A stretch of 64,000 bases of DNA from Paragordius varius (taxonomy: Eukaryota; Animalia; Nematomorpha), in NCBI GenBank assembly GCA_964247055.1, contig OZ176056.1, forward strand, positions 7,006,001 to 7,070,000, read 5' to 3'. The translations under genes and the position numbers were made by a program. Positions 22,910 through 61,794 of this stretch are shown one piece after another. Below the pieces are notes generated by a model. The model saw only the letters and a list, made by a program, of their open reading frames with translations. It did not search any database and had not been told where the DNA came from. Positions within the stretch are counted from its first letter, which is position 1. Each line of letters begins with the position of its first letter.

Positions 22910-22941
<32 letters not shown>

Positions 22942-28900: not shown

Positions 28901-31900
28901 ATCGAATGACGGATTCGGAGCAGTTTTATCACATATGACAAGTGAGGGAAAACGGCCGATAGCTTTTGCGTCTCGAAAATGTGCGAAGGCAGAACAACAT
29001 TTCTGTAATTGAAAAAGAAGCCAGGGCAATTTTATATGCGCTAGAAAAATTTAAAATGTTTGTGTATGGCAGAAAGTTCGCATTATTAACCGATCATAAA
29101 CCCCTAGTCAAGTTGTTTGGTTTTAAGAGAGATCTAAGTAATATTAACAAGAGTAGATTAGTAAGATGGATACTCAGAACAGCCGATTATAATTTTACTA
29201 TACAATATATTAATGGTTCGGAAAATTTAGCGGATTGGTTATCTCGTCTACCGTATGAAGAACCGACTGAGGAAGTTGAGGAGCAACCCAGGCAAATCAA
29301 CTTTCTAACAACTGACAACTTAAGCGTACAGCGAATGAAAGAAAATACTTTACGGGATGAGTTTTTGATGGCATTAAAATCGGCTCTGCATCATAATGAT
29401 TGGTCAGCTCCAATTCTAAATTCGGTATTGAGTATAAGAAACGAAATACAAGAATCATATGGTTTGTTGTATTGGGGCGATCGTCTGTTTATACCCAGGG
29501 CGTTGCGAAATGAAACGTTAAAATTTTTGCATGTGGGACATTCGGGGGCTAATGTAATGAAAGAGTCTGCCAAGGCTAGGGTTTATTGGCCATGTATAAA
29601 CCAAGATATTGAAAGTTATGTGAGATCTTGTTTGGGGTGTCAGTTAAACCGGAGTAACATAAAAAGTAATCCAACATACAAATGTTTAATACGAATATCT
29701 GGGAAATAATACATCTTGATATTGCCGGTCCTATAGATGGGTTGTATTGGTTAGTAGCTATCGATAGTAGCTCCAGATGGGTTGAAGTCGAATTGCTAAG
29801 AACTGTTAATTCTGCAAACATACTACATTGGTTGGAAATTTGGTGTGTAAGGTACGGGTTTCCCCGAATGATCTTACCGATAATGCAGCATATTTTGCAT
29901 CGAAAGATTTTAAAGAGACCTTGCAACGAGCAAACATCAAACACGTCACTAGCGCCCCCTATCATCCACGAACAAATAGGCTGGTGGAACGGGTCATTTA
30001 CACCTTAAAAGCACACTATAAATCGTTAACGGATTCTAAGCTGACTCCTGACAAAAAAATAAACCAAGTGTTATGGGGTTATCGCTCCGCCGTACATAGC
30101 GCCACAAAAGAGTGCCCGTATAATTTATTTCTGAAAAGACAGATTAATACCCCCTTCTCTTGGGTTAGGGAAACACCTGCACAACAATTAGAGGACGACA
30201 TAATTCCTAATCAAGTTTTTAGACCGGACGAAGAAGTGTACATAAAGAATGAAATCAATTCAGGGTGGAGAAAAGGTTCAATTTTGGAGAGGACAGGGGT
30301 ACTCTCGTACACGGTTAAAGATGGAAATCGAACACTTCGCAAGCATGCGGATCAATTACGGCCGACCGGAGTCGAGAACGGCGTGGAGGAGGAGGATAAT
30401 GTAACGATAAACCAAACAGATGAAGAGATGACAACCAATAATCGGGAGGTGGGGAAGGAACCAAGCAAAGAAAAAGAAAACGAGAAAGACACCCAGGTTG
30501 AAATAAGAACGGAAAAGACAACTGAGAAAGAACCCGAAAGGGTTTATCCTCTTAGGGAAAGAAACGCACCAGATCGGCTCGGATTTGGATAAGGAGATAT
30601 GATAGATTAGAATACATCAAGTTAGTTAACCTTAGACGAGACCAATTTATATATTAGATTTGAATACATTTTGATGACCTTTTATATATGAGTTAAACTA
30701 TTGTATCAATTTTGTATTTAACCTGCACGCGTTATTTTACCTTGGCTTAACATGTAAATATTGTATTCACAAAAAGTATATAAACATCGCAAACTGTATG
30801 TAGTTAAGTAATTACATTTTATCTCAATAAATCTTATTGTTTTACGCTTTCTTGATTTACTACAACACATATTTTCAAAAATTTCTTAATAAAATTTCTA
30901 TTATTGTAACGTGTCTATATGTAGCCACCGTATTAAAAAAACTAAAAATTATTTTCAAGCCTAAATTTTTGTGCCAATTGATAATAACCGATAACCGCTT
31001 GAAAAAATAGTTTCACATTGTAGTTATAAGTTGTTAAATAAAATATAACATTTCCGTAAATAACATTTAGCCCATAAAATCTATATAAAATTTGTACTAA
31101 TACCGTATAAAATTATATTCGGGCTATGCTGTAATTATATCAATTGAAATAGAAAAATCTAATTAGGTTACGCAATGTAATTAAACCTGTAAATTATAAA
31201 AATATAATTTATCGATTGCCCCTAGAATATTTATGTACCGTGTCTTACACATATAAATAATAACTATATTTTGCAGTTATATATAACTAACATTTTATTG
31301 GTTGCGCTTTTCGAAAATTATTTAAAATATGGTCAAAATATCCTTGAGCTACTTATTCAAACAATTTATAATTTAAACAGTGGTATTGCAAAAAAAGTTC
31401 AACATTTAATTACAAAAAATTATACCCAATTTTTTGGCTTGGAGTAAATCTTGCTTATTGACCGCAAGGATTTCATGAGTATTGACAATTATGGCTTTTG
31501 AAAGTTCTTGTAATATTAAGCCCCTTTGTTCATGCGTTAATTTTTGTAGCTTTTGGCTCCCTATCCTAGCTATGTCAGAAAAAATGATTATATATATTAA
31601 GTTAAAAATTTAGTTTTTATTTGAAATAAAAACGCATATTTTGCAAAATTCACACAAAATATATGTAAAATCATATATAAATATAAAAGCAAAAAACTTG
31701 AATCTAATATAATTTTAATTGTTGGTTAGTTTACTTAATATCAATATTGGCAATGTATATAATCAGTTTTTTATTACAAATTTAATGATTAAAAAGAGGG
31801 GATAGGTACTTAAATTTACATAATTGTTAATCCCTATCATTTTATAAATAAAAAATAAAAATCAACTTAAATGTCAAATACAGTATGAATAAGTATTGCT

Positions 31901-34260
31901 AGAAAGTTATTAATTATTGCCGAATAGCATATGCAGCAAAGAGAATTATTATTGGCTAATAATAGCAAAAATTGAAAAAAATATATATAAGCCAATAATA
32001 CCGCCCTTTGTAGTAAATGCTATTTGGCAATAAATAATAACTTTCTAGCAATATATACTTACTTATACTGCATTTGATTTAAACCAAATTTTAAAAATTG
32101 GTAGGAAAACAGCGATACTATTTAGAAAAAAGGGGCAGAAATACCAAGTTTAGCCATTGTAATAACAGAGTCGCTAGTTTCAGATCTGCTAACATTCTGT
32201 TTCAAATTTTCATGGTTTATTTCCTCTGCAAGAGTTTTCAAAGCTTCATTTTCTAATTTTTCATTATTACTAATATCATTAATTTCACAATCGTTTTCTT
32301 TTGTTGAATATTGGTGGGAGTTGAGTTCTCGAACAAAAAATGTACCAATAGCTTTGCCCTGTAATAAATCTCTCAAACTGCCTTTTTGCATCCCATTACA
32401 TATGACGACGGAACAGCCATTATCAAGGGCAAAGGTTGCAGCTTTAATCTATCCATCCATCCATACAACATATACATGTGAACATACATAAAATTTAGGG
32501 AACAAAAAATTAATTGTGGATCATAAAAACAATTACAGTAGTTCCCCCAACTAAAAGAGCTTTCTTGATGAAAAAAACAGGGCCTATAATAAAATTAGCT
32601 CATACTTTTTATCATATTTTCTGATTTTTAGCCTACCGTTCAAAGTTAAGCATACCTTACCCACAAACTTAAAGTGTACAACCTTTATACTGAGTACCCA
32701 CATAATGAGATATTTTAATGGGAAATGAGCTATTAAATTAATCACTCAGGCCATAAATTTAAACTTATAGTTCAAAGATATCTTTTCACTTTACTACAGT
32801 ACAGTATACCCCCCCCCCCACACACAATGGCAACTTTCATAAGGAACGTTTTGAATTGGAAAAACAGGAATACTAATCATACTCTCAAATGAGTTTGTGA
32901 ATGGAAAAACAAGACATCCTTTTTATGAAGAAATTTACAGTTGTACTTGAGAGAAAATATTAATTGCTGTGCCATAATTTTATAGCTCCCGTCATAATTT
33001 TCTTGTTAAAGGAAAAAAGAGCGCCTGGTATTACAATATAACAGTTAAATATGACTCTTCCTGTTTCTGGATAGTTTTACGTAGTAATATAGTTTTTTTA
33101 TTTTTCTTCCCCATAATAAATAATTAAAACTTAGTATAAATATAGAAAAATCTTATAGTATACTATAATGCAAAAGATGTTTTATTTTATTAACGATCAT
33201 TAATTACACAAGGGCCTAGATATTTTTCCCATAATAGGGCCTCTCATAAGGGAGATCCCTTACAAATTTAATACGCGGTTAAAGTATGCTTTAGAGTGTA
33301 TGGTATACAATAAAATTATTGGATTTTTTAAGCAATAAATATATTTGGTTTAAGAAGGATTAAATAAATTTACACAGTATTAATGTCACCTATGTTATAA
33401 TTACAATATTGTAAAAACATTAATACCCCATCTTATAATGAAAATATATAGATTTAAAATTAAAATTATGGCTTTTTGTACGTTTAAAACAGATTGATTT
33501 GATCTAACATCAATTAGCACACATATATTTTCAGCCATAAATATGTCACATAATGTAAATATAGCGGTCATTTTCTGACATATCCATATATGGAATAATT
33601 CAATAATTTTAAAACGAATATGATAAATGTTAATCTATAAAAAAACTTTAGATAAAAATAATTTATATTATATATATATGACTGAAAGATCTTTTGAAAA
33701 TGCAAATGTGTATTATACCTTAGATTCCATACCACCTGTTCCTACGCGAGATTTCTGTCCGAGTTTAATTAGGCGTTCATGTACGCTGGGACAAAAAATA
33801 TTCATAAGTTTTGGCATATGGCTGGAATTATTTGTGCCTTCAAACTTAGTTGTAGAATAATTTAGCTCCTCCGTTTGTTCTAAAATATAAATTGTAAATA
33901 TATATATATATATATATAAATTATATACTTCACATATTTTTTCAGCCATGCTCTTTAAAAATCGTAAAAATTATTACTGACCTAACAATTGCAAATAATT
34001 TATACTTTCAACATTTTACATTTCTTTATTCCTAATTTGAACACAAAACCATGTGATATATTTAAATCAACGTTTATAAAATATATTTGTATTTTAGTTT
34101 TTAGTTATGGCGTTTATAATTTCAGTTTACTGTATATGAAAAAATAAAGCTATTAATTAATATGGGGTTGCATTTTGGTTAAAAATATGGTAAACCAGAA
34201 CAAAAAACGAATTTACTGGTTTATTCCCATACAATTAAATAAAGGAAGTTTATCATGAGA

Positions 34261-34307
<47 letters not shown>

Positions 34308-37300
34308 TTTGTTTAAAATTAACATGCAGGAGAAAGATAAAGTAAGCGATAATATTTGCTGCCCATAATTTATAAATTGGGCGAAAACCCTAATTTATTT
34401 TTAGGGTGAATTTGAAATGCTAAAAGGTAGTTTGGAAGTGTTAAAGTCAAGGGTGCATATGAGGTACAATATATATTGAACTATTGAGTCGTATAATATT
34501 TTAGGGGACCACTTGTTTTGAGATTATAAAACATTTATACTTTCCTATTATTATTTAGTTATATTTTATCAAAAAAAAATTGTGGAATCAGAACAAACTC
34601 AGTTCTATATTTACATATATGAAGATTTACCATACATATATATATACATATATATATATATATACATTTTAGTCTTTAAATTTGTCATTTTAACAATTAT
34701 TGCTTAATATAAACAAATCTAACCAAATTACTTACTTTCAACCGTATTTTTAGTGGGTGGAATACTGTATATACCATCCACGTCGGAGATATTAAGAGAA
34801 TTCGATACAAAGAAAAAATTAAAAAGTAATCTAAAATCTTTTTCTATTTTAAAAGTTAAGGCATAATTGTTTCAATTTTTGCTCAATCATATTTTCAATA
34901 AACGAAATTACTTTCAACCGTATTTTCAGTGGGTGGAACACTGTATATACCATCAACATCAGACATTATGACTAAGAGGTCAGCCCCTACATCAACGGCC
35001 AAATGTGTAGCTACTATATCATTGTCTTTAACGCTAATTACCTAATAAAAATAATATTAATTATACAGGAATTTGTGGAGTAAACCCGTTTTTTATTAAC
35101 CAATATAAAATAGTCATTGATTGAAAGGCTTTATAAATCTTTAATTAATTTTAATGTATATAGTATGGGAAGCCTATACTTTTTTTGAAAAAAATGTGTT
35201 TTAAAGCCAAAAATATAAAAATAACACTGATTATAACCGGATTTTAATTCGCGAATCACTTTTATCACATATCAGATTTTGATAATTTTATTTAGGAAAG
35301 AAGAATTGTTGCTAAATGTATTATGAAAAATATTAATAAAAGAATATTTTTGTTTTTTTAAACAATTACAAAAATAACCGTCTTAAGGAAACCAAAACTA
35401 TGATATGGTTTATCCTTTGAAAATCATGCTTTAATAAAATTTAATATTAAGACATAATGTTAAACTCAAAATAGTAAATGCTGCATAAAAAAATACATTG
35501 AAAGGAATTCAGGAAAACAATTTTTTTACCGCACAAACACAATAATGTATAATATCCGGTACTTAAATAAATTTTTAACTAAAATTTGAAATTCGTTTTC
35601 AACTTATGAAGTTTAATTTTTTAAAAATACTTAGCATATACAGTAAAAATTGAAATTATACGAAAACGTAAGAAAGATAAATATTTTTTACCAAAAGACA
35701 ACCATACATTTTTAAACCTTAACTTTTATCCCATAAGCTATTTAATTACAATTGTAGTAAAATATAAAATTGATTGTGTTAGTAATATATACATCTCTAT
35801 TTCACTCGTTGCAATATTAAATAATAAGTTATAAACAAAAAAATCAAGATTTAAAACGTATGGGGTTGTCTTTTAGAAAAAAAAGATTTGTCTTTATATT
35901 TTTACGTTTGGTCCATATAATTTCAATTTTTACTGAATTTACGAATCCTATATTCATAAAAATAAAATTATTAATTTAATATTTACCCCACTAAGGTCTG
36001 AATCGAGTTTGGGGGGAGGGGCAATCACATCATTAGCATTAACTATGGGACAAATTTTGAGTTGCAATAATTCATGTATGGTGGATCGTAAATTGGCTCG
36101 ACAATGTTTATCATTGAAATCGGGTTGCGTTAGCAAAACCTGATTGAATTAAGGTTAATTAAAATCGTTTTATTTTATAGAAAAATTAGGATTTGGTTAC
36201 CAATTTGGTGGAAATTTTAGACAAAAAAAACAAGTTTGTTTGACAATTGGTAATGAATTATACAACAGTATGAATAAGTATATTTTGCTAGAAAGTTATT
36301 ATTTTTTGCCAAATAGCCTATACAACAAAAGGCATCATTATTGGCTTATAGTTATTTATTTGACTTTTTACTATTATAGGCGAAAAATAATTCTCTTTGC
36401 TGCATATGCTACTTAGCAATAATGAAATAACTTTCTAGCAATATATATACTTACTCATACTGTAATTAGTTTTTGTTATAATACTAAAAAATATTTTTTT
36501 TAATTGTTTTCATAATAAACCCGTAATTAAAAGGTCAACAAATTAAGTATTATTCGGATAATGCAATGCTACAAAATAAGAGCACAAAAACATCTAAATG
36601 AATAAATAACCCAATTGAACAAAAAATTTGCTAAGAACCATATTATTTCCGAAATATAAATTAGGCCTAATCCTAAAATAGTTTATTTAATAAAAACCGT
36701 TCAAAAAATTAAAATGTCGCTGTGTAAAAAAAAGCGTTAAGCTAAAACTTGAGCAATTTTTATGCCATATTGGGCAAACATGGCATCGTACAAAGCCATA
36801 AGACCACTCTGACCAAGCGCTGCAAAAGCTCGGGAATCTATATCATTGAAAATTGTATTTGCAGCATTCAGTAAATTACCATTCATGCTTACCATTTCAT
36901 GCGTGTTATGGTTTTTATGGGTTTCATCTATAATGTGTAGAAAAAATAATTATAAATCATTTTTGGTTTAGGCTTTTTTTTTCTATACAAAAAATTTTTT
37001 TTGTATCCCTCTCGATAATCGAAATATAATTGACAAAATATTTGGATTTAATATAGTGGGTGCCTCCTGTAATGACTTTCGGCTTTTTTATAATAAGCCG
37101 TGCAAATAATTTAATTGAATTATGCGGTTCCTCATATATTTTAGTTAAAAAGAAATAGTTTAAAAATAAATAACCTTCCAACAAACTTACTATTTACTGA
37201 TATTTTAAAGCACCTACAATGAGCCGAAAATGCAAGATAATAGAATTTTTATTAGAAAACTGTATATTAATTAAAATTTTATTTAAATTCAATGTTTTTT

Positions 37301-40300
37301 CTTAAAAAACCATTAAAAATCGGGCATATAGCCATGTGTCATTCCACAATTGTGGGCCAATATAAAGGAGTTTCTAAATACTTAAATTTTTGATTTTAAG
37401 ATTACACCAAAATAAGAATTAGAACAAAGAGTTAACTAATTTTTCAAACCTTGCGTATAACCATTCTGTTGGCAAACTTTATCTTTCCCATTAGTCTTAT
37501 TTGCAGAGGCGGTGATGATATATTCATGATGACTTTGATAAAGGTTAGATAAGTTTTTGAATGCATTGATTTCTTGTTTTAGTTTTTGTTTTCCAAATGC
37601 GACAGCTCCACTCGTAACTATTAGGACTTGACGCCCTTCTTTATACATTTCAGCGACCTAAATAAACCGAAATGGAATTTATATGGAAAACTAAATTTTT
37701 AAAAAACTCGCATCAACTTATTTTCATTGATGTAAAAATACTTTTTTATATTAATATATTTACACTTGATGAAAAAAATGTAACATTTTAGATTTATATG
37801 GATATTAGTATCATTATTCAAATACACAATACAATCTATTTAGTTATAACTATGCTTTTTGCAAATTATTGCACAAAAAGGTATCTATTAATTTATAGTT
37901 ATTTCATTAGAAAAATTAAACCAAAGGCGCTCACAACACAAGTATCTTCAATGGCCGCATTTCCGATTTAAAAAAATATATCTATGGATATTAACATATA
38001 TTTTATTAAATTTTTCAAACTTTGAAACTCGAAAAAATTTATAAATATAAATATAATAATAATTATTAATTTCACCATGTTAGCTAGTTTAGCCCCCATA
38101 TAACATAGCATTCAGATTTAAATTGTTTTCAAATATATCAAGGTTAAAAATTTGTAAGTAGCATAAAGGAGGGCTTAAAAAAGCTGCATGAAATTTTTCA
38201 AATCCACTCTTTATTAAAAACACAAAGTTTATATACTGATGTCAATTAATCAATAATTCTAAACTTTTACTTCGCAAACATTAATTTCTAAGCAAATAAT
38301 ACATGAGCTTAAAGGCTAAATGTTTTTAAAAGTGGGGCGAATAGAAATACCACATCATCCAAAAATGAGATTATAATGCTAAATATTGCTTTACATTTTC
38401 ATTTATTTGACCGAGTTTACCCTTTAAGGTAGTTTTACATGCCAGAGGTCAATTTCATAAATACACTACAGTTTTAAAAGTTATGTTAGTAGAAATTTAA
38501 TTATCAAACCGTGTTCTCATATATTAGATAAAAAGCTTATATTTTTTACAGTTTCGTGACTTCTAGAGCCTAAAATTGGAACAGTTCCAAAAGACGGTTG
38601 AATCTGAGCAGCTGATATTAAAATTAAAACATATCAAGTTTTTGGTAAAGTGTATCTAGACAGCTTGTTAAAGTTAATTATTTACAATTTTAACCATATT
38701 CATTTAAATGTCTGTTGTATTAGCGATTTTTAAAAAATATAAAAAAAATATGGCGGCAAAAAGTTAGACATGAGGTTAATTAAAAAAAAAATTGTACAAT
38801 GTTCCTAAAAGACTAAAGAAAGCGTATTTAAAAATTCGGCCTAATACCTTAAATACATTTTAAAATAATCAAATTTCAAATGGCTCTGGGATATAAACCT
38901 ACCCCAAAATGTAGTGAACTGTTAGAATAATAACAAAGAAGGCAAATAATTAAAGTTATTCTATAATTTATACCAAGTTATCTTATCTGTATTCCTAATA
39001 AATTGATCAAAATATTTATATGAAAATTAGTTCTCCCAAATGCGCCTAATAAAAAGTATTATGGGGTAATTTATTACATTTTTCGGTGTTATAGAGAAAT
39101 TAAGCCTAAAAAAATTTATATCAGCCACTCTTCTTTTCAGATTAATTTTTATAAATAAAATTTTAATCTAACAACTATATGATAAACACAAATATAATAT
39201 ATATATATTTATATAAACAGGGCTTGCCTTAATTAGTGCTTCCCATATGATTTTTATTATACGGTAGTAAAAATTGAAATTATACTGACAAAAAATATAA
39301 AACAAATATTTTTTCAAAAAGATCTTGATTTTTTTTAAATATAACTCTCATTGTTTTAATCTTCAAAGTATAATATAGAAATGTAAATTTGTAATACAAT
39401 CAATTATATTTACAATATTATTTAATAGTTTATATGAATAAATTAAGGTTTAAAAACGTATGGTTGTCTTTTGAAAAAAATTGTCTTTAAATTTTGTTTA
39501 GTCCGGATAATATCAATCATTACTATAAAATTTTTTATTCTATTATATAAATTGATTGTACCACTATATATTACACACTTAAAACTTCAAACTAAGCGCT
39601 TTAATTATATTAGCTATACTCTCTGAATTTTGGATTTGGCTGTTCTAAAAAATAGTCATGATACATTACAATGGATGGGATAAAATATTTTGTAAGAAAA
39701 TCATTTAATCAAAAGTTAGGAACCGAAAATGGAACCGGTTCTCATTGTAAAGAACCGGTTCCGGAACCGGTAAATTTATAAGGAACCAACGCGGTTCCGG
39801 TTCCACTTTTTTTAAACCGGTTCCAAGCCCTGATATATAACCTATTTCCGTAATAAAATGCATTTGTGAGTCAATAAAACCGCTTCTAGATTCCAAAAAA
39901 ATTTGATAATAATTCTTCAGACACCTTTACAATTTTTAAAATCCTATTTTATTTATAAATTATTGAAAATTACATTAAATTATAAGGTTTTAAATACCAA
40001 AAAAATATATGTAAATAAGCCATAACATTCGTCGAAATTTTAATGGCAAAAATTGAAAACCACTTAATATAGCTTAGATTTTAATGTTAGATAAGAACGA
40101 TAACAAGTTCCGCATTTTAAAACATACAATATATTATTATTAACACAAAAATTGGCAATAATTATTATCTACAAATACCGTGTTTTATTAATCCTTTATC
40201 GATCCTTAAAAATATAAACGACCAAAATACTTAATATGCATATTTGCTAAATGTCAAAAAAACTGAAAAATATTGACAGCATAAAGTTAAAAAACGTCAA

Positions 40301-40939
40301 AAATGACATTTTAAAGGAAAAATAAATACATGTTAAAAAGATATATGCAATAATTGGAGTCAAAATCCGAGTTTTGTTTCAGTGATATAAACAAATAATT
40401 TAAGAATATTTTTTAATTCAAATTTGGATTCTATTAAAAATTGAAAATGGGGTAATATACGGCAAATTAATTATTTATGCTATTCTCAAAAGAATTTAAA
40501 TATACCTATTTTAAGATTAATTAATGCTAATATAAAATAATGTTACATTTTCTAGTTCTAAGCGATTCGAAAAAAAAATTTATGAACAAAATCTAACTTG
40601 TTCAACAATCGAGGCTAAATGACCAAGAGCAACACCGCATTCATGATCTCTGGCTATGACAGCACTTCCAATTTTAAGGACAATCCGCTTGGCATTTGCA
40701 TTAAGTTGAGAACGAAGGGTAAAGGCTTGCTTCTCTTTCATAATTTGTCGAAGTAATATATTCTTCTCTTTATCGGATTCAAAATTATTAGTTTCAATAT
40801 TTAATTTGGTAGCAGTTAATGAACGAGAGGAATACTGATTAAAACATTTGTATGGCTGATGTAACAAAGATAAATTATTGTTTTTCAGTATGGTTAATAT
40901 AGAATAATGATTGTTTCTTGCACAAGTACACAGCATCAT
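18058..40939 (-). CDS. ALDH18A1: Delta-1-pyrroline-5-carboxylate synthase (glutamate kinase + gamma-glutamyl phosphate reductase), 17 exons, 1017 aa
   Basis: Exons (minus strand): 40939-40598, 37657-37450, 36927-36749, 36139-35987, 35041-34912, 33879-33719, 32448-32145, 31569-31426, 26430-25994, 25025-24888, 24549-24438, 23919-23836, 23080-22953, 20278-20176, 19392-19258, 18759-18664, 18257-18058; total 3054 nt, all GT-AG, all phases compatible. Motifs [138 protein letters not shown] match recalled human P5CS. Confidence 0.95.
19750..20079. mobile_element. MITE, TATACCATTTACAGTTCAAATTCACCC subfamily
   Basis: Tandem aattcacccttgaacaattc repeats on the left, inverted gggtgaatttgaactgtaaatggtatata on the right. 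Confidence 0.7.
20440..21434 (-). mobile_element. Decayed Penelope-like element, 3' portion (RT C-terminus + GIY-YIG)
   Basis: Minus-strand [13 protein letters not shown] (GIY-YIG YIG.TGRS...R..EH motif), [21 protein letters not shown] and a YVDDIF-encoding segment near 21400; inverted partner of 21435-22650. Confidence 0.75.
21435..22650 (+). mobile_element. Decayed Penelope-like element, 3' portion (RT + GIY-YIG)
   Basis: [11 protein letters not shown] (RT G.PMGS.LSP-like), tatgtggatgacatattt = YVDDIF (~21660), [25 protein letters not shown]. Confidence 0.75.
22690..22915. mobile_element. Foldback MITE
   Basis: tttattttatcaaaa..gaatggaaaaacaagagctctatg and catagagctcttgttttttcattc..ttttgataaaataaa are long inverted repeats. 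Confidence 0.65.
25127..25497. mobile_element. MITE, TATACCATTTACAGTTCAAATTCACCC subfamily
   Basis: ~30-bp TIR atataccatttacagttcaaattcaccctt with tandem subterminal repeats; same family as 19750-20079. Confidence 0.8.
26576..26840 (+). repeat. 5' LTR
   Basis: tgatagattag...gatttactaca; matches 30600-30864 except at 26705, 26782 and 26823. Confidence 0.95.
26843..26852 (+). other. Primer-binding site (tRNA-Ser-like)
   Basis: TGGCGCGGTC 2 nt after the 5' LTR; resembles the complement of tRNA-Ser 3' ends (TGGCGCAGTC) with one G:U-type change. Confidence 0.6.
30600..30864 (+). repeat. 3' LTR
   Basis: Preceded by purine tract ggataaggaga; 262/265 identical to the 5' LTR. Confidence 0.95.
31880..32072. 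mobile_element. ~195-bp MITE (CAGTATGAATAAGT..GCTAGAAAGTTATT TIR); second copy ~36266-36465
   Basis: Inverted ends cagtatgaataagtattgctagaaagttatt / aataactttctagcaatatatacttacttatactg, repeated at 36.3-36.5 kb. Confidence 0.65.
35641..35935. mobile_element. ~290-bp pogo/Tc1-like MITE (CAGTAAAAATTGAAATTA TIR); further copies ~39265-39525, 56877-57164, ~58665-58944, ~61028-61292
   Basis: Long imperfect TIRs cagtaaaaattgaaattata.g.a.aa.gta...aaaagacaaccata; the 56877 copy is flanked by TA on both sides. Confidence 0.75.
39218..39832. mobile_element. hAT-like MITE (cagggcttg TIR) with aaccggttcc subterminal repeats and a nested MITE
   Basis: cagggcttg at 39218, caagccctg ending at 39832; repeated gaaccggttcc motifs at 39720-39825. 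Confidence 0.55.
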
Positions 40940-42085
40940 TATTATTCCACCCTATTTTTAGTTCAGCAACCTATTTTAGCACATGGTTTGGCTTGATGAT
41001 GTAATGTGTGTCAACAATTCACATGACATAATTTAAAATATGAAGATAGAGAAAAGAATACTCATAAAAAGCCATATTTATATATATATATGTAGTAATC
41101 GTCTAAGATTCTTATTATTACTTTTGATTTATTAAATTTAAAAAAGAACTTAAATTATTAATATGCTTCCAAATTTAAATATAGCATTTGACTGAAATGG
41201 AAATTTTTTGGATAAACCAGCGATATCCAACACATATATATTCGCGGTACAATTTTTTTGTTTTTTAAGCCAATTCTGTATGAAAATTATCGTAAATTAT
41301 CAGGTATTACACATGATTGCTATTTTAACAATTAACAGCCCATGTTTCTATCTATACTAAGTATGCATTTTTATTTTATTTTACGGTCTTTTAAAATATA
41401 TTATGGTTAAATTTGACTTCATGATCTGTAGTTTTATACCCATGGTCCATAAAAAATATTTTTAGAATTGAGCCAAAATATATAATTATGCCTTTTTAGC
41501 CTTTGATGAGCATAAAATAAAAATAAATTTCAAAAAATTGTGAATTGTAAAAAAATTATCCTGAAGTTTTTCGCTACCATTTTTCATTTAAATTTTTTTA
41601 AATCGTTAACACAGTGTCCAAATATAGTGATGAAATATTAAAGGACCGTTTTTTCGGTGAATATTTATATAGAACAACTAATATTTGACATAAATTTGAA
41701 GACCAACGAATAATTTAACCAAATTTCTGGGGTGATAGATAGGTCCGTATTATCAAATTAAATATATAAAGTGTTACTATATAAAAGCCTTATTATACGT
41801 TTCCATCATGCCTAAATATAGTAGAAAGTATGTATAGACAAAATTTTTCAAAAGTTGAATTATTTAAAAGTATGCATTTTTTAACAATGTTGTCACTTTT
41901 TTTCGCTCTCGATTTTTTGCGCTTCTAAAAGAAGTATTGCGTTAGAAGAGCGAAAAAATTTAGAACTTTCGGAGTCCACATTTAAAAACTGAATTTTTTG
42001 GAAGCATTTAGCGCAAAAATTTAATTGATTCTTTTTTTATACTCGTAAGGGCCAAAACCAAAAAAATTTTTCTATCACAATTATA

Positions 42086-44975: not shown

Positions 44976-45706
44976 ATGCTTTATAACGAGGCTCAACATT
45001 TATACACCCCCTTTTATTGGTATTGATATATTTTATTTAGTGAGGAAAATATCTGGCACCTGTGCGATAAATTAAAAAAAAATTCTCAAATTACTGATAA
45101 ATATGTCATAATTATTACCAATGACGTTAAGATGGTAATCTTTTATGTTTAAATTAGTTTCCTATGTGGTCGGTTAGGAATGATCCAAATGGTATTGTTT
45201 TGTGGGTATTACTGCTATATTGTATATTTTAGGATTACCATGTTATTCTTTATGATAAAATAAATAAACTAATATATGATTTTGATACTCTTTTACCATT
45301 TGGGATATCAGTTGATACATATCTATTGGAAGCTCTTAATATCTCATCATCTCTACATGATCCCTTTAGAAGAAAGGTTTAATCAAATCTTATTACAATA
45401 GTATCGAGTGATCTCTGCCTTAAAATTTTTAGAAACCTTTGCATCTGACCGCAGCCATATGTTAAAAAAGGGATCAATTCACGAATATATTCATGTACCT
45501 CCTAAACATAAACCAATCAAAACATCAAGTATCGTTTAATTAATAGATTTTAAGCATCTTCCAATAATCTCAATTATTTTTTGGATATCTCAAACAGCTT
45601 GTTGGATCACTGTCCAACTGAATATGATTTGAACCAAACATATGGGTGTGTCATCTCGGAAAAGCAATTTGTTCAATTTATTTCCAAAAATTACCTACAA
45701 AATTGA
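44976..45706 (+). CDS. NTAQ1: Protein N-terminal glutamine amidohydrolase (WDYHV1), 6 exons, 202 aa, five introns of 21-27 nt
   Basis: Exons 44976-45019, 45041-45134, 45158-45205, 45233-45376, 45402-45528, 45555-45706 (609 nt). They splice to MLYNEAQHLYTPFYCEENIWHLCDKL...VIIITNDVKMFPMW...GIVLWDYHVILYD...IYDFDTLLPF...FRRKYRVISA..FLETFASDRSHM...PP....IKT...NNLNYFLDIS...YGCV....F. This tracks recalled human NTAQ1 (YCEENIWKLC, ISNERKMIPIW, VIWDYHV, YDLDTVLPF, FRRKFRVI, FASDRSHM). Catalytic Cys-His-Asp residues are present. Confidence 0.92.
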
Positions 45707-45894
45707 ATTTTTATATTTTACAAAATATTTTTTATTTTAATATGAATTAATATTAAAAGTATTGGTTATATTAATTTTTATATTAAACTTTTACAAGCCT
45801 GCATATAAGATAGCTCATCATACATATTTTGATATAAACCAATTTTTAGCGTTAGGCTTGTGAGTGTGAACATATACCTATAATATAGATTTTG

Positions 45895-48825
45895 ATTTTA
45901 TTATTATTATTACATTACATGTTTTCACTCGTGAGAGCGGTCATGTTATACAACCTGTCTCGCCATAAAACTCTATCTATGGCGTCCTCTGCATTAAGCT
46001 CGTATTCTGCTAGCTCTCTTTTTACTGTATCTATCCATTTTGTTTTAGGTCGCCCACGTCCTCGTTTTCCCTCAACTATATAACCATCTATTATTTTTGC
46101 AATATAATTAGAATCTCTCCTTTCAATGTGCCCGAACCAACGTAGCCTATTTTTTGACATTCTTTCCACTATTGGTTTAATATCTGTGCTCCCACTAATA
46201 AATCTATTCTCAATTCTGTCCTTTCTAGTTACCCCACACATCATTCTGAGCATTTCCATTTCAGACACGTTAAATTGTCTTTCTTCGGATTTTTTGACCC
46301 ATGTCTGTGAATTATACATCATTGAGGGCTGGACAACTGAACTGTAAATCTTACCTTTCACTCTAACATCAATATTTCGATCGCATAATACGCTCGAAAT
46401 TTTCTTCCAATTTACCCAGCTGCTCTTTATTCTTAAATTAATATCGTCAGTTAACGAACCATCTGCACTTAACATAGCTCCCAGATATTTGCAACTTTAT
46501 TTACCCTTCAGAACCCAACTATCATCAACTACCATTTCATGTTGTGGACCCCCAAAAGTAATAAGTTCGGTTTTTGCTTTGTTTACTTTCAGACCATATT
46601 GATCCAGCATAACAACCCATCTGTTTACCGTTCGCTTTAACTCAATTAATGAATCAGACAAAATGATTATGTCATCTGCATACATTAAGTACCATCCTGA
46701 ACTCACATTAACAACCTTGGCTACCTCGTCCATACAAATTATAAACAATAAGGGGCTGAGTGATGAGCCTTGGTAGACTCCATGCTTTATTGAAAAGGGC
46801 TCTGATAAACCTTGTGGAGTTTTAATCCTGGAGGTGTGTGATTAGTACATTATTTGTAACAACTTAATATAACTTTCTGGCACCTTTTTACGACGGAGAC
46901 TCCACCAAATAATTTCTCTAGGAATCCTGTCAAACGCCTTCTCTATATCAATCAAAACCCCGTGTAATTCTTTCTTTTTTTCAATGTGTTTTTCAATCAA
47001 CTTCCTAACCGCATGTATAGGATCTACTGTTGACTTTCCTGGCATGAAACCAAATTGATTTCCTTCTTTAGATATCATTTTCCTGATTCGCTTTTCAATT
47101 ATTTTTTCAAACAATTTCATAGTGTGCGACATAAGTTTTATCCCTCTATAGTTACTACATTCATTTATATCACCTTTTCCTTTAAATAAAGGTACAGTTA
47201 AACTTTCCTTCCATTCAACCGGGATTTCATACGTTGAAACAACTTTATTAAATACACGCTCCAAAAAATTTAATCCAGAATTTCCAAGCACTTTCCAACA
47301 ATTTATATTTATGTCGTCCGATCCTACAGCTTTGTTGTTTGGCATTTCTAACAAATTAGATTCTACTTCCTTTTGTGTAATTGCTTCTATTGGTCTATCA
47401 GTAGCTTCAACTGTATTTGGCAAAAATATCTCGCCTACCCCTTCATCTAAACTCACAAAGTACTCTTTCCATCTTTTTAATATTTCTACATTTTCGCACA
47501 GCAAGCTTCCATCTTTTCCTTTTATTGCAGTCGCATAACCTGGCAAATCCATCCTGCGTTTATTCCTTTGCTGCGCAACTTTATACACTTTGTTTAAACC
47601 TTGCTTACTATTTAACTCATCATAAAATAAATTCATTTTTTCTTTCTTAACCTGGCCGACTAATTTTTTCAATTCCTTATTTAAACTTTTATACTTATCT
47701 CTATCATCATCATTCCTTGTATGTCTCCATTTGTCAAAAGCCTTACCTTTTTCTCGTGACATCAATATTATTCTTTCATCGTAAAGCCAAGCCTCTCTGT
47801 ATACTTGAGATTTTCCGCCTTTTAATCCACAAACTAGAGTTCCTGCCTTTTTGATTAACTGACTTACTTTATCCCAATCACCATTTAACCCACCATCCTC
47901 GGATAACCGTATTTCTTTTATAAAAGCCTGCCTTTTTTCGGATAATTTCTCCCACTTAATACTTTTTAATCTCTTTGAATAAGAACCACTTTGTTTAGAC
48001 TTTTCTTTCACGAAAAATTTACAAATAAGTAAATTATGTTGCGAACTAACCTCTAACCTTACAATCTATTACAAGCTTCAATAAGTCTCTTGGAACAAGT
48101 ATAAAATCTATTTGAGATTTGTTTATGCCGCTCTTAAAAGTTACTAGATGACTCTCTCTTTTTTCGAAAAACGTGTTCGCTATCGCCAAATTGTGAGATT
48201 GTGCAAATCTGAGCAAATTAACCTTCCTCGTTTATTTCTCCATAAGAATGTCCCCCGTGCCATATTTCAAAAGATTCCCTTTTTGAACCAAGATGACCAT
48301 TAAATTCCCCACATAAAAACTTGACTCTGAGCTGAGGGAGAGCGACTATTTTTTCATCTAGAGTCTCGTAAAATTGCTCCTTTTCTTGTTTCGGTAAACC
48401 TATTTGCGGGGCATATATACTAAATACCGTTATGACCTCGTTACCTACCAAAATATCTAAATTCATGATTCGGCTGTTATAGCGTCTTACTTCTTTAACC
48501 TGATTGGACAATTTGGGAATGATAATTGCCACTCCATTTCGTCCGCCACTTTCACCTGAGTAATATAGTCGATAATTCTCTTCCAAAGTCCTTGCTCCGT
48601 TTCCGCGGTAACGAGTCTCTTGTAATCCCAAATATCAATTTGTTTAACTTTCATTATTCTCACAATATCATTTAACTTACTTTTCAATGAACCAACATTT
48701 AAACTAGCAAAATACAGGCATCCCGTATTCCTTTGCATTCTCTTTGTATTATTGGCCACAACACCAAAACCGCGGCTGGCCAGGCCTGACCGGTTATTAC
48801 TATACACATCAATATTCATTTGACA
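45895..48825 (-). mobile_element. Near-full-length decayed RTE-type LINE (APE endonuclease + RT)
   Basis: FASLNVGSL, GLQETR, FSIYAPQIG, GEFNGH (endonuclease); KAVGSD, WKES..VPLFKGKGD..ECSNYRGIKL, NQFGFMPGKST, DIEKAFDRIPR, LMYADD, GLKVNKAKT, RLRWFGHI.R, GKRGRGRPK..W; (TAA)n 3' tail near 45900; several frameshifts. Confidence 0.9.
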
Positions 48826-50039
48826 GCTTTAAACAAACAAAATAAAAATAATAAAATTGAAGTGTCGAACTAATTATGACAAATTGATAGATGTTAAAAA
48901 AAACCTAGGCTATAGGTAAAAACGGAAATTATATTTCGCAATAAAAAATTTAAAGCAAAATTTATGTATAAAACAATATAAATCAAGGGTTATTTTATGT
49001 GTCATAGTAAAAAATAAAATAAATAGTGCTACAATACTTATCCAAGAATACAATCTATATATTTAAGAGAATATTAATAGGCAAATTATAGGAAAAGGCC
49101 AACGGTAAGTCCTACGTCCAAAAACAAAAATGGGAATAGGTATGTTATAACAAAATTTAAAGTATAGGATAAGTGATAAAAGATAGAATAAACTTTGAAG
49201 ATAAATAGATATAATATAAAATAAATAAGAATTTAGAATTTTTCGTTTGTGTAGTGGTCGAACGCGCGCGCGTAATAGGAGAGTTAATTTGGATCTTTTA
49301 AATTAATCATGCATCAACAATTTTTAGTGTTGACTAACGAGCATTTTATTATTTTTCTTGGTGAAATAAAACGATGAATATTAAACTATTCGAATTGGGT
49401 GGACACAAAAGGCATACTTCATTGTTTGTTTATCTTTTTTGTGCCTTATTTCATAAATTTTGGAATGATTAAAATAATTTCCGTAAAATTCGAGATAGGT
49501 GACAAAAAATGCTAGTTTCGTAAGCAAAAGACTTAAGTGTTTTTTTTTATCACTTATCTTTAAGTGTTCACGCTGGATTATGTAAACTTGCTCAACTTTC
49601 CAAGCTTGCCTTATAAGTCAATTTCGACTTTTTTATCACCCCATCCGATATGTATACATCTCTTAATATTAATCGTACACCGGTTTTGTAACACGTCAAA
49701 ATGGAACAGGATTATGGAAGAAAATATCGATATAATTTTCAGTTGAAGGTAATAGACGGAGTGGATTGCACTTATTCTAATTTAGTAAATAAGATTAAAG
49801 AGGTTAAACGATATAAAAGCCTATTTATAAACATTTATTTATTAGAGTAGTTAACGAGGTCACGGTGTTATCCTCTGCAAATAGATTTTTCCAAGCATTA
49901 AGATAAACAGGTTTTTTACGACCAAAGTTTGTTCATAACCTACCAAAACAGTATATTTAAGTTACAATTAGATTTTGTATTGGTTTCGAAAAATTCGATG
50001 TAACGTCAATTTTACCATAGCAATTATTATTGCATTCGA

Positions 50040-54700: not shown

Positions 54701-57700
54701 TTTATAATCCGCCAATTACAAAATGCTCACCTGAGAAATCTTCCTCTCCACTATGCCTTTGTAGACATGGAACAGGCTTTCGACTCAGTCCCGCAACACC
54801 TGATTGCTTGGTCGCTCAGAAGGCAAGGTATAGAGGAAAATATGATACAAATAATAGAAGCACTATATACGAACACCTCAACTGTAATCCGTACAAGCGT
54901 TGGCGATACGAACCCCATCCCACTTGAAAATGGCCTACACCAAGGTTCTATATTAAGCCCCTTTTTATTTATCCTAATTATGGAGGAGATCACAAAAGAC
55001 ATACGAAAAGGCTTACCTTTTGAACTTCTGTACGCTGATGACTTAATATTATGCGCCACATCTGCAACGGAATTAATGGAAAAGTTAAATTTATGGAAGG
55101 ATACCCTAAGTAAATTCGGTTTAAAGGTAAATACATCTAAGACTAAACTAATGTGCGATGAAAAAGAAACAATAAAATGGCCCTGTTCCGTGTGCTCATT
55201 AAATGTAAAATCAAACTCAATAAAGTGTAACAATTGTTTAAAGTGGGTACATAAAAAATGCTCCACTTTAAAAAGTTTATATGATAATAAAAACTTTATC
55301 TGCCCCCCGTGCAGTACAACCAATACATTAACCAAAGAATCCCCCGAATCCTCCACTTTATTCGAAATTGTCGACAAATTTACATACCTAGACGATACTT
55401 TAGATGCTGGTGGTGGTATAAAATCGGCATCGCATAGAATCAAAGCCGCCTGGAAAAAGTATCATAGTCTGCGCACAATAGTAAATAATAAATACGTTTT
55501 ACTCAGTTCAAAGGCAAATATTTTTATGACGGCTATACGTCCTGCTATACTATATGGTACGGAAACATGGCCTATGACTAAATCAAATCTACTATCACTG
55601 CAAAAGGGTGAGCAAAAGATCCTAAACGCCATTCTTTTCGCACATAACCCTAACATATACAATTTCCAAGCCAAATTTTGCCCCTATCAAACTCTAAAAA
55701 TTAAACCAATTAATACAGCTATCCGTACCGTTTGCGTTGGGCTGGTCGCATCTACAGAGCGCAAGACACAAAGTGGATAAAGCTCATACAGTCTTATTCA
55801 ACCAATAATAAAAAACAAAAAAGGAAGGCCTTAAAAAACCTGGCAATCCACCATTCAAGAAGACCTAGATTTCCTCAGTATCGATATCGAACAAGCTCAA
55901 GACAGAAACAAATGGAAAACTATAACACGCTTACCTCCTTTGAAAGGAGAAAATAGCGTATAAAGGTGATATATTAAACTTGTTATAAATAATTCAGTGC
56001 CATAAAAAGGGATTTTAGGGCCCTATGCGGCCCGTGGGCCACGGTTTGATAATCACTGGTCTAAACAATCCTATTTTACTATGGGCTTTACATATTTTAA
56101 ACATTGATGAATAATACCGGTTAGATAAATATAACTGTGTCAATCTTAGATAATAGCTGTTTAATAATAACTTTATGGAAAAAATATTAAGATAAATTGA
56201 AATGCTCTTATAGTACAATAATTATCAAATATATTTATAGCCTAGACGCATAAATATTGTAAAAAAATGGTATTTTAAGAAAATAAATCGGCTACCGTAT
56301 TTTATTTGGGCTGTGAGAATCATTAAGGATATCATAATACAAGGATCTTCGAGTTTCCTTAGTGCACCACACCTGAAAATATAAATTTTCAAAGCACAAA
56401 TGAAAAATATAATTTGCATTATATATATATAAATACCTGAGCAAAGGATAGAAAAAATAATTGATTTTGTGTCATGTTTAAACCGGGTAAGTTTAATTCG
56501 TTTTGACCGATTTTTCCATTCATTGAAGCTGTATTTTTCGATGCTTGCTTAAAAGCCTTTTATAAGAAATCATAAATTTATATACGTTTATGAAAAACGG
56601 CTGACTGCATTTAGGACAAAAATCAGACACGGTCAAAACCAGTCAATAAATGCATGTATGTTATACAACTGCAATTAACTATCATACCATTTTTAATACT
56701 TTTTCCTTTCTTCTGTAATAATAACTTGAATATTTAATGATCAGATTGAGTAGATATTGATATATTATTATAAACTCTAAAATATAAATTACTTACATTA
56801 AATGTGGCTTTTAGTCCTCCGTTATCTGCAATGTTCTCACCGATAGTTTGTCTCCCATTTATCTATGCATGACATACAGTAAAATTTAAATTTAACGGAC
56901 AAAACTTAAAAATATAAAGACAATTTTTTTTCTAAAAGACAACCATATTTTTTAAGCTTCATTTTAAAAAGGATAACTCATTATTTTAATTTGCAAAATA
57001 TAAGATTAATATGTATATTGGTTACACAATCAATTTTATATTTTACAATGGTAATTATATAATTTATATGAAAAAAATAAAGGTTTATAAAAGTATGGTT
57101 GCCTCGTAGAAAATATTTGTCTTTATGTTTCAACTTTTTGCTCCTTTAATTTCAGTTTTTACTGTAATAATAAATCTATGAAATTCGCACCCATAAATCC
57201 TGATATGTTAATAAGATAAAACATAATTTTCCACAGGAATGGTGAAATATTTTTTGATATAATATAACGTTAATATGATTGTCAAAATGTACAAATTAAA
57301 ATAGGTATATAAAAAGTTTTTTTAGTGACTAATTACTGTTGATAACGAAAAATGGATATTTTTATAAACTTTATAATTTAATTTCCCATAACTACAGTTT
57401 TTAATATATAAAATATCATATCGTGTTTGTAATACTCACAATCTAGGAACCTAAGAATCAGCTTTTCGGGAGCGGTAAATATATCTTAGTTTTTATAAGT
57501 GAAAATCGGTTTAAAACGGCAAAAATTATACGTTGTTTTCCGTTTTAAAAACATTGTCATATTTTTATTTTTCTTTTTGTTTAATTATATACAAATGTAG
57601 ACATACGAACATATAATACAATTTTTAAAACCAAGCGAAAAAACCATGCAGAACACCGGATTTTGCAATAAAATTGGAACCGTTTTGATCTAAACCCGTA

Positions 57701-59674
57701 TTTTTCTAAAAAATACGGATCAATAACTCGAATCCGGTTTCAATCCTTACAAACAAAGTAAATATTTAATTTACTTCAAAAAATATGTTCCGAATCACAA
57801 AATATCTTGTACCATTAAGTTAATTATATTTACGATTGGTCAATAATTATCTAATTATTGTCGTTACTGGTATTCCTAATAAACGGTAGTTAGAATATTG
57901 TTTGTCCAAACATCGGGCTTTTTGTTCAAATCTAGCAATCAATTCATTGTTCCACCATGCCTTAAGATTTCCATCTTTGTCAAATTGTCGGCCTATATAG
58001 TTTTAATTTTGGACACATTGATTAAATTAAAAATTTTGTCATGACTTTCATATAAACAAAGTAGATCATATAAAGGTTTACCAGTATCATCAAAACCATG
58101 GGTTAATTCATGGCCTACTACGAACCCCATTGCCCCATAGTTTAAAGCTCTTAAAAATAACGCATATTTCTATATTTTCGATTCACATGTATATATTTTT
58201 TGTATAATTATGCATACTTGGGAAAATCGCTATCATAAAATGGTGTTTGCAAAATTCCAGCAGGGAACACTATATATAAGTTATAATCAATTATATATGT
58301 AAGATATTTCAACTTTTAGCTTAACTAATCTAAAAATACCCATTTCGTTTCCAGTTGCCAAATAATATGCATTGACCATTGGGGGAGTTAGAGCCCAACT
58401 TTTATAGAATAAAAATAAAAACTCACCTTATAAAAAAATATTCAATATATTTTTATAATTAGCTTTCGTGATATTAAATTCGTGAAAACAATTCAAAATT
58501 TAAAAACCTATATTATTTACTAAAGGTAGGTTCGATGTAACCGTTTGCCAACCGAAATTAGCTTAGGTATAACTGTTTTACAACGAAAAAAGACAACAAA
58601 CTTGGAACCGATGTTTGAAACGGTTTTCATAAAGTAAAATTTTTTTGGTTTTAATTTACGCGAGGTTAAAATTGAATTTATACGGACAAAACGTAAAAAT
58701 AGGGTGAAATATTTTTTTTCTAAAAGACAATAATACCTTTTTATCCTTATTTTTTCTTAAATGAATTATATAATTACAATTGTAAATTACATAATTGATT
58801 AAGTTACTAATTAACATCTCTATTTCCTAATTTGCATACAATGACTTTATTTAAAAAAATCTAGTTTTAAAGAGTGCATAGGTCTTTTGGAAAAATTTCT
58901 GTCTTTATATTTTACGTTTTGTCCGTATGTTAATTTTTACTGTAATATGAACATGTTGATGACGCTTGTTATTTTGATTTTTATTGATTCTTAACATTTA
59001 AATTATGAAGGTTTATATTATTGAAAATTACTTTAGCAATTTTTTTAATTACTACTTTTATGTTATATGAGTTGGCATTCAATTATAAATATCAGTTATG
59101 CGAATTCTAACCGTTTGTAGCGGTTTAATACAATCATTATAGAAAAAAGCGGTTATTGAACAATCGGTTCTAACCCTGATATATAAAACTTATGAGACTT
59201 AAAAAACGAATGGTATAGCAAAATCAACACAGTATTCAAAATTATTGTTAGGACAATTATTAAATATGTAGAAAAAAACTTTACTTTACAGTATGCATTT
59301 TAATGGTTGCCTTACACACTATAACTGGGCAATTTGCAACACAGTGGTGTAGGTAAAAAAACAAAATATTGAATAAAATAAACAAAGTAATGTAAGAAAG
59401 GAAGAAATTGTTTATATTCAACTTTTTTAGTTTTTCCCATACTTTACTGTGTTGCAAATTGCCCATATAGTGTAAAATAAACAACCCATAAAATGCATAC
59501 TGTAATTGATAATTTTAAAATGACCAAAAATTAAACTAAAAAATAAGATGGTAGATAACATATGCCTAAATAATAAAATATTTTTTCTGGAAAACGGTTT
59601 GGAATCGTTTTTGGCCTTTTCTGGTTGCGGTTGTTCACAAAAAGCCTAACTAATAATTCCATTTTTAATTCATG

Positions 59675-59706
<32 letters not shown>

Positions 59707-61757
59707 ATGATACTGCTGAAACTCAGTTAAAACAATATTACTTGAATTGTACAGAAAAACATTATATAAAATTAAAAATTTAGAACTCCCATATTGAATT
59801 TTTTTTATAGAAATAATTAATTTTAGTCAAAAAACGCTCTAAGCAGTATAATAGTTAAGTGAACCACCGTTAACGAGTATCTAGATTTATTAGGGTTTAT
59901 TCATTAAAAAAATAATGGTACTAAAAAACCGTTTTTTTTTACCTTTAAATATTGTGTGAATTATCATTAATTTTATACTTGTTTGTATTCATGGGAATTT
60001 TGAAAGGAAATTATTATATATACCCCTATTTTTTAATAAATGCATTATCATTATCACACACTATCGCTATAATCTAACCTAACAATCTCCCTATCCCTTT
60101 TTACAAGGCTATTTATTGCAACCCATTATTTGGTTAAAAATTATAAATTTATACCTAGTTTTATCCACTGGTTTATTTAGTTTCTGTAAGGCACGTTTGA
60201 TAAAAAATTTGATTTGTTTAAGATTATTTTCGAAATAAGTGTCTTCATCAAATTCTAACTATAAAAAAAGTTGATTACATAATGTATTTTAAATGTTTAT
60301 ACACTATATATAGATAAATGTACCCCTTCATATCTTCTTTCTAATTCGGTTTGATTGAGCAAAAACTCGGGGTAGCCGATTTTGTTGCGAATCGCATCTG
60401 CCTATTTATGAGAATATCAATGTACAAGCTAGAGAATATAATAATTATCGATAACATTTGATAGTAGGCTTGGGTTTTTAACAAATAAAATTAAAATTTA
60501 TCCTTAGAATATAATCGTTTGCGGTCATAACTTATGTTAACAAATAATAAATTTTTGTACTAAAAACAAATCAGATTTATCACAAATGTTTTAAGATTTT
60601 TATTTAAACTACTAACATAAATCTGATATTTAATACTTTAATAATTAGAAATAATATCAATATTGGTAGAAATATTTCATGCTATTTTTAAAACTAAAGA
60701 GATACCCCTAAATATATTACAACATGATTCTAGGATACATTAATAGGGCCTCCAAATTTAAAATACCAGAGTTAATCGATTTCTCTATTTTGGTATTGGC
60801 AAATTATAAATTATTTTTATATCTAAATTAAATAAAGTTAATATCCTATAGCTATACCTTTTCTATCGCTGCTTGACTAGTTTCTTTGTCCATCCAATCA
60901 AGTTTAGGAATTTGAGACTTAAACGCTTCCTTTATTCCATCTATCAATGACTCCGCCTAAAATTTTCGATTGTTACGCTTTAATATAACTTTACATAAGT
61001 TCGAAAGTAATAATTTAAGATATAATAGGGTAAAAATTAAAGAATACGGACGAAACCCAAAAATATAAAGACAAATATTTTTTTCTAAAAAACAACCATA
61101 CTTTTTCAATCTCTATTGTTTTCAATATAACTTATTATTTAATGTTGTAAAGTATGAAGATTATACATTACTAACATCAGTTTTATATTTTACATTCTAA
61201 TTCAATGGCTTATAAAGGAAAATAAAGGTTTAAAAAAGGATGGCTGTGTTTTAAAAAAATCGTCTTTATATTTTTACGTTTTGTCCGTATAGTTTAAATA
61301 TTTATTGTATTATTACCATTTTTTTATCACTGTTTTTAAAGTTGCTTTTAATAAATAAGGCGCCAAGAGGGAATCCCACAACAGAATTCGTATCCGTCAA
61401 ACAGGCACGCCAGGTTGGTGTAACGGTTTCCGCACTTCCTTGAAGTGCTTTGGTCAAAGGTCTTAACGTAGCCCGAAAATCGTAAGAAAGATATGGGACC
61501 AATTTATTCACCACATGCCACATGAAATAATTATTTAGCAATCTAAAAAAAGTAACCACAATCATTTACAAATTTAAATAAAAGAAATATTTTTCACTAT
61601 ACACCAACCTTTTGGTATCCACATGCCCAAGTTGTTCCTTAATAAAAACGGTAAGATTGGAAAAGTAATCTTTGGAGCGTACAATGATTATTTGATCTTC
61701 CGTCAATGTCACATTGATTAATTGGAAGAGTTTATTAAAATACGATGTCCAATTAAG

Positions 61758-61794
<37 letters not shown>

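Follow-up and report, generated by a model that had tools for sequence, protein, structure and literature searches.

Can an animal gene be interrupted five times by introns of only 21-27 nt, in the midst of transposon-rich DNA where neighboring genes carry introns of up to 5.6 kb, and, if so, from what did such introns arise and how would they be removed? This question is raised by the NTAQ1 locus at positions 44976-45706 of a 64,000-nt stretch of hairworm DNA, the whole of which was analyzed and is referred to here as the window. Among 51 genomes, animal introns below 30 bp were found only in Myxobolidae and Dicyema, and were linked to the compact genomes of these parasites (PMC13644364, September 2026), in a survey that makes no mention of Nematomorpha. 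The literature searched held no reports on hairworm introns, with introns below 30 nt recorded for myxobolid cnidarians and Dicyema only. The reading favored here, and considered likely, is that the locus is a working NTAQ1 gene in which shrinkage has left 21-27 nt of each of five ancestral introns, and that these would be removed by the ordinary major spliceosome.

Architecture of the NTAQ1 gene

Script-based removal of five pieces from the 731 nt of genomic sequence yields an open reading frame of 609 nt that encodes 202 amino acids and closes with TGA. The parts of the gene are as follows.

44976..45019, + strand: NTAQ1 exon 1, 44 nt, from ATG to TG, the first two bases of the catalytic Cys codon
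45020..45040, + strand: micro-intron 1, 21 nt, GT-AG, phase 2, containing a TGA in frame; codon and phase shared with introns of 50-1177 nt in seven other species
45041..45134, + strand: NTAQ1 exon 2, 94 nt, matching positions 7-39 of the Pfam profile PF09764
45135..45157, + strand: micro-intron 2, 23 nt, GT-AG, phase 0; site common to Trichoplax, Lottia, Dendronephthya and rice introns
45158..45205, + strand: NTAQ1 exon 3, 48 nt, 16 aa, the last residue being the Trp of WDYH
45206..45232, + strand: micro-intron 3, 27 nt, GT-AG, phase 0, its final TAG in frame; tgg/GT..AG/ga in all six animals compared
45233..45376, + strand: NTAQ1 exon 4, 144 nt, encoding two catalytic residues, His (DYHV) and Asp (IYDFD); covers Pfam positions 58-110 and residues 79-129 of human NTAQ1
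45377..45401, + strand: micro-intron 4, 25 nt, GT-AG, phase 0; 4 nt 3' of the phase-2 site of other species
45402..45528, + strand: NTAQ1 exon 5, 127 nt, encoding the motif FASDRSHM; covers Pfam positions 112-150
45529..45554, + strand: micro-intron 5, 26 nt, GT-AG, phase 1; site common to Trichoplax, Lottia, Dendronephthya, Rhodnius, Adineta and rice introns
45555..45706, + strand: NTAQ1 exon 6, 152 nt, closing with the stop codon TGA

An earlier note on this DNA had claimed that the frame is restored only by excising five GT-AG pieces of 21-27 nt, that keeping any one of them breaks it and that the catalytic Cys codon is split. The coordinates, lengths and sequences of the pieces all proved to be as described. 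When a single micro-intron is kept, a stop is met 1-8 codons past the joint in each of the five cases (at codons 17, 52, 71, 112 and 156, in intron order), and the two micro-introns of a length divisible by three hold an in-frame TGA and TAG, respectively. The division of the Cys codon, part of the YCEEN motif, is likewise seen in the spliced frame, as TG/T across micro-intron 1. The GC content of the window is 26-29%, compared to 31.4% in the NTAQ1 exons, 18.9% in the five micro-introns and 19-24% in the flanks of the gene. Just upstream, an open reading frame of 10 codons (ATGATAAAG...TAA; 44944-44977) extends over the start codon of NTAQ1 in another frame.

Identity of the predicted protein

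Judged by homology, the locus is a full-length NTAQ1, encoding a predicted N-terminal glutamine amidohydrolase. The matches of exons 2, 4 and 5 to the Pfam profile PF09764 (Nt_Gln_amidase) lie at consecutive profile positions, so that the match continues from exon to exon, with the 16-aa exon 3 filling the gap; exons 4 and 5 each exceed the 27-bit cut-off on their own. Residues 9-191 of the spliced protein align with approximately 120 NTAQ1 orthologues at 37-45% identity (best E 2e-45; BLAST), and these alignments span all five joints, at each of which they are ungapped. Exon 4 aligns with human NTAQ1 (PDB 4w79 and others) with conservation of His81 and Asp97, and the YCEEN Cys pairs with the catalytic Cys of the orthologues, such that the entire Cys-His-Asp triad (human Cys28, His81 and Asp97) is kept. 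The human enzyme (4w79, 3c9q, 6kgj) thus resembles the predicted protein in its PF09764 family, its length of about 200 aa and its triad, but the two are only about 40% identical, and an insertion of some 12 aa close to the C-terminus sets them apart.

No second NTAQ1 copy was found in the 64,000-nt window (tblastn), and an exact look-up of a neighboring 186-aa open reading frame for extra copies of the locus returned nothing on record. No protein more than 45-59% identical was found with exon 5 in a representative library, in a profile search or in a search with exon 4, and a maximum-likelihood tree of NTAQ1 proteins places the predicted protein on a long, unplaced branch. For placing the organism, the 346-aa exon of the M13 peptidase gene was used as a further query and returned no match. 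A separate observation concerns a 153-aa protein from an ENA metagenome contig (P0005), the NTAQ1 fragment of an unrelated AT-rich organism, which bears about 20 extra residues exactly at the position of intron 5; these look like an in-frame intron of about 60 nt read through by a prokaryote-style gene caller.

Ancestral positions of the micro-introns

Intron positions were compared with the NTAQ1 loci of Daphnia pulex, Trichoplax sp. H2, Lottia gigantea, Dendronephthya gigantea, Rhodnius prolixus, Adineta ricciae and rice, with each of the seven orthologue proteins mapped exactly onto its own genomic DNA to place the introns. This comparison, suggested in the earlier note, gave a new result that supports its gene model: by alignment column and phase, the micro-introns of NTAQ1 are the positional counterparts of normal-sized introns in animals and rice. 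Micro-introns 1, 2, 3 and 5 (phases 2, 0, 0 and 1) coincide exactly, in both column and phase, with introns of 50-1177 nt in the compared species, while micro-intron 4 lies 4 nt away from its counterpart. The rice gene itself shares positions 1, 2, 4 and 5. Even the exon letters at the joints match those of the orthologues, as seen for ttg/../tg at intron 1 and tgg/../ga at intron 3. Four of five introns at ancestral positions argue for shrunken ancestral spliceosomal introns, and against contamination, a dead gene, random interruptions of the sequence or a trait that arrived with a foreign gene.

The exception, micro-intron 4, is in phase 0 and is displaced from a phase-2 site common to the six animals and rice. 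The preceding exon exceeds its expected length by 4 nt, and the following exon falls short of its own by 4 nt. No canonical GT/AG pair that would restore the old site is present near this micro-intron, and the shift may date from a deletion that ran past the old splice sites as the intron shrank.

Intron size in neighboring genes

The genes and mobile elements that surround NTAQ1 give the micro-introns their context, and the principal features are listed below.

18061..40951, - strand: P5CS gene, 12 or more exon pieces, each separated from the next by at least about 330 nt
26800-30600, + strand: LTR-type retroelement with RT, RNase H and integrase zinc domain, in the largest P5CS intron
45915..48828, - strand: non-LTR retroelement remnant (endonuclease and RT), ending about 200 nt from the NTAQ1 stop codon
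52861-55780, + strand: non-LTR retroelement (endonuclease and RT)
56422..63573, - strand: M13 peptidase gene, with three introns placed exactly, one of about 64 nt and longer ones

The short exons of P5CS were mostly too weak for detection by Pfam, and the gene was confirmed by PDB matches, its first and last pieces matching residues 38-91 and 722-764 of Drosophila P5CS (7f5t). The largest of its gaps, at 5.6 kb, contains the LTR retroelement (26.8-30.6 kb). In the M13 peptidase gene, introns of 70 nt (58339-58270), 68 nt (58217-58150) and 89 nt (58081-57993) could be placed exactly, and the exons joined across them read through the HExxH region; a further intron of about 64 nt lies near 61.57 kb, accompanied by several longer ones. 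No micro-introns were found in either gene, although each may contain very small unrecognized exons.

The window contains at least 26 introns, and the micro-introns make up all five of those in NTAQ1 but none of the at least 21 in P5CS and M13, which measure 64 nt or more. Were introns dealt among genes at random, the chance of all five micro-introns falling in one gene would be about 1.5e-5, and no intron sizes between 27 and 64 nt occur in the genes checked. With only ordinary introns in P5CS (from about 330 nt) and M13 (from 64 nt), intron size in the window is sorted by gene, and the earlier claim that neighboring genes carry ordinary introns holds for these two genes.

A blind scan of the window for GT..AG pieces of 18-33 nt that join two open frames returned 389 candidates, mostly in retroelement open reading frames, compared to 18-56 per strand on shuffled sequence, and was too noisy to use. 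Candidate micro-introns beside P5CS exons were dropped, as the frames that they joined were non-homologous. Elsewhere in the window, two serpin-like copies lie about 7 kb apart on the + strand (5477-8458 and 12575-14289; Pfam Serpin at 6681-7160, 8114-8461 and 13888-14289), and around 12680-12700 the frame of the second is disrupted compared with the first, so that the second copy may be a pseudogene. Low-complexity repeat units that read EFELFKG or NSNSPLN, depending on the strand, recur in several introns and on both strands (19762-20099, 25102-25556 and other sites).

Splice signals and a plausible route of removal

The 5' ends of the micro-introns read GTATTG, GTAATC, GTATTA, GTTTAA and GTATCG, and those of the M13 introns GTATTT, GTATGC, GTAAAC and GTTGGT, while the 3' ends are ..TAG or ..AAG in both. 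A yUnAy motif is present 9-15 nt from the 3' end in four of the five micro-introns, a frequency expected by chance at such AT-richness. The earlier note had proposed a distinct micro-intron splicing regime, a claim that is not borne out, since the micro-introns and the M13 introns of 64-89 nt have their weak signals in common, opening with GTA.. and closing with ..TAG or ..AAG. Splice-site letters that are alike in both size classes give no sign of separate machinery, and argue instead for one spliceosome acting on reduced signals.

A dedicated, gene-specific regime, with changed or extra factors or snRNAs serving some genes only, is accordingly unlikely, even if it survives better than the other alternatives considered here. 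It would account for the sorting of sizes (five of five introns in NTAQ1 versus none of at least 21 in P5CS and M13), and the gap between 27 and 64 nt hints at two classes. Against it stand not only the GT-AG ends and weak flanking letters common to both classes, but also the inheritance of the micro-intron positions from ordinary introns and the retention of canonical U2 snRNA and U2AF in the published cases of introns below 30 nt (PMC13644364). No snRNA or any other RNA family was detected in the window (Rfam). A U12-type assignment (5' /RTATCCTT, branch TCCTTAAC) was also rejected: only intron 5 (GTATCGTT) approaches the 5' motif, the branch motif is absent, and the GTAAGT-like introns of the orthologues further oppose this assignment.

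Under the preferred reading, that of ancestral introns shrunk within a working gene, the major (U2-type, GT-AG) spliceosome would recognize each micro-intron as a unit, that is, by intron definition. The signals required would be minimal, namely GTA or GTT at the 5' end and a T/A-rich stretch that closes with ..TAG or ..AAG at the 3' end, with almost no pyrimidine tract. The likely branch point is an A located 9-15 nt upstream of the 3' end, in an A-rich region. Exon definition would hardly be comfortable with exons as small as 44 and 48 nt, which may be why all introns of the gene shrink together. With a stop in the upstream frame of every piece, translation of an unspliced transcript would end early, and nonsense-mediated decay would probably remove the transcript. 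In Paramecium, the pattern of stops upon intron retention is explained by translation-coupled quality control and nonsense-mediated decay.

The locus in independent sequencing runs

Contigs from sequencing runs were placed on a 1201-letter stretch around the gene, with runs X2, X5 and X6 representing DNA. A Logan short-read contig from run X2 carries 44877-45873 in one unspliced piece, at a depth of 118 compared to 115 in the upstream flank. The same run displays a two-allele bubble at 44773-44906 with depths of 60 and 70, as expected for single-copy diploid DNA. The continuity of this contig, its equal depth and the adjoining retroelement make contamination or a chimeric join unlikely. As all five pieces are kept in the genomic contig at full depth, their removal at the DNA level is excluded for the tissue sequenced, and a ciliate-type origin as internal eliminated sequences, already at odds with GT/AG rather than TA ends, was rejected. 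In a further run, X18, the one RNA-like candidate, the fraction of sampled words found was 0.51, close to the 0.54-0.66 expected for spliced mRNA, but no contig was placed on the locus.

Near-identical DNA of 44700-45900 occurs at depths of 2-9x, and with its own SNPs, in runs X5-X11, which are filed under seven other organisms in studies of their own. This occurrence would fit parasite DNA in host samples or Hi-C library carry-over. Several loose contig ends in these runs begin or stop at GATC. One low-depth contig has an extra A within micro-intron 4, which is thereby 26 nt long; in coding sequence this would be a frameshift, and it is thus tolerable only if the piece is non-coding. Two low-depth contigs from other samples carry the non-synonymous changes P84L and L94W, which could be errors or reflect relaxed constraint.

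These data also bear on the possibility of an NTAQ1 pseudogene, untranscribed or unspliced, in which the small pieces would be mere remnants. Such a reading is decidedly unlikely. The two non-synonymous variants in low-depth contigs would suit it, as would the lack of any protein of this gene in the databases searched, but a frame of 202 codons is maintained with neither stop nor frameshift, for which the chance probability at the composition of the window is about 3e-8 (stop probability of 0.082 per codon). The triad and all conserved motifs are intact, as are the splice dinucleotides at all ten intron ends, and the pseudogene was rejected on these grounds.

It is very improbable that the genome belongs to a lineage for which introns of this size are already published, that is, a myxobolid or a dicyemid. 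The GC content of 26-29% is near the 29% of Henneguya salminicola, but the myxobolids have median introns of 22-27 nt and few transposable elements, and Dicyema has a GC content of 36.7%. At least 21 of 26 introns in the window are instead 64 nt or longer and retroelements fill it, while GC content and repeat load match the published genome of the hairworm Gordionus montsenyensis (26.93% GC, 63.8% repeats), the description of which never mentions introns.

Least probable of all, and scarcely credible, is a foreign or chimeric origin, by contamination or horizontal transfer from a ciliate, microsporidian or myxozoan, a way out left by the earlier note: intron sizes like those of Paramecium or myxobolids, a frame that ends in TGA and is devoid of TAA and TAG and the long unplaced branch in a single-gene tree would agree with it, but an independent contig links the gene to both flanks at matching depth (118 versus 115), the composition is like that of the surroundings, host-type retroelements abut NTAQ1 and four of the five introns lie at ancestral positions, and a ciliate contaminant in particular was rejected with the gene joined to animal-type DNA at equal depth.

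Implications for intron shrinkage and gene annotation

It is reasonably likely that Nematomorpha constitutes a third independent animal lineage with introns below 30 nt, and the first in which these lie beside kilobase introns, in a large (~290 Mb) and transposon-rich genome, sorted gene by gene. The locus would then be a clean counter-example to the published restriction of animal introns below 30 bp (PMC13644364), and a particularly clean one in that every NTAQ1 intron is a micro-intron with a dated positional counterpart in other species. Extreme intron shrinkage would be separated from genome compaction. Indeed, a gene composed of micro-introns alone, set in transposon-rich DNA where the introns of nearby genes measure 64 nt to 5.6 kb, suggests that shrinkage is not simply a by-product of compaction and acts gene-wise. 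The question of minimum intron length would gain a within-genome contrast, with one spliceosome facing two or three size classes.

There are also practical consequences. The earlier expectation that such genes escape open reading frame scans and predictors with a minimum intron length fits the finding that no NTAQ1 protein of this gene is present in the databases searched. If standard gene finders do miss such genes, part of the conserved genes described as missing in hairworms may be an annotation artefact, and gene counts and claims of gene loss for this group deserve to be re-checked.

Comparison with known systems of ultra-short introns

Parasitic flatworms have a short class of introns of about 30-36 nt. 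They resemble the window in that intron lengths in a parasitic worm have two peaks, but the short class described here is shorter by about 10 nt and, within the window, is sorted by gene.

The introns of the ciliates Paramecium and Nyctotherus, at about 25 nt (PMC5014332), fall in the same size range as the NTAQ1 micro-introns, and their retention likewise always puts a stop in frame. In these ciliates the short introns are uniform across the genome, whereas here they are confined to some genes and embedded in animal-type DNA at equal depth.

Among animals, Dicyema japonicum has a mean intron length of 38 bp in a genome of 67.5 Mb with 36.7% GC and 49% repeats (PMC6736024), and so offers a parallel in its introns below 30 nt, its parasitism and its repeat-rich genome. 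Nearly all of its introns are short, however, while in the window kilobase introns occur in neighboring genes and GC content is only about 27%.

The introns themselves also resemble those of the myxobolids, where median intron lengths are 27 bp in Henneguya salminicola and 22 bp in Thelohanellus kitauei and Myxobolus rasmusseni, and where a reduced GTa 5' signal, conserved positions and the clustering of short introns beside short introns have been described (PMC13644364). The NTAQ1 micro-introns are alike in each of these respects, as GT-AG introns below 30 nt at conserved positions and flanked by conserved exons, with a GTa signal, no real polypyrimidine tract and short introns flanked by short ones. 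The myxobolids are nevertheless cnidarians with compact genomes of about 75 Mb and few transposable elements, in which micro-introns are the majority class. In the window, at least 21 of 26 introns measure 64 nt or more and retroelements occupy both intergenic and intronic DNA, so that the micro-introns form a minority among introns that otherwise range from 64 nt to 5.6 kb, and the transposon-rich DNA around them is probably ecdysozoan.
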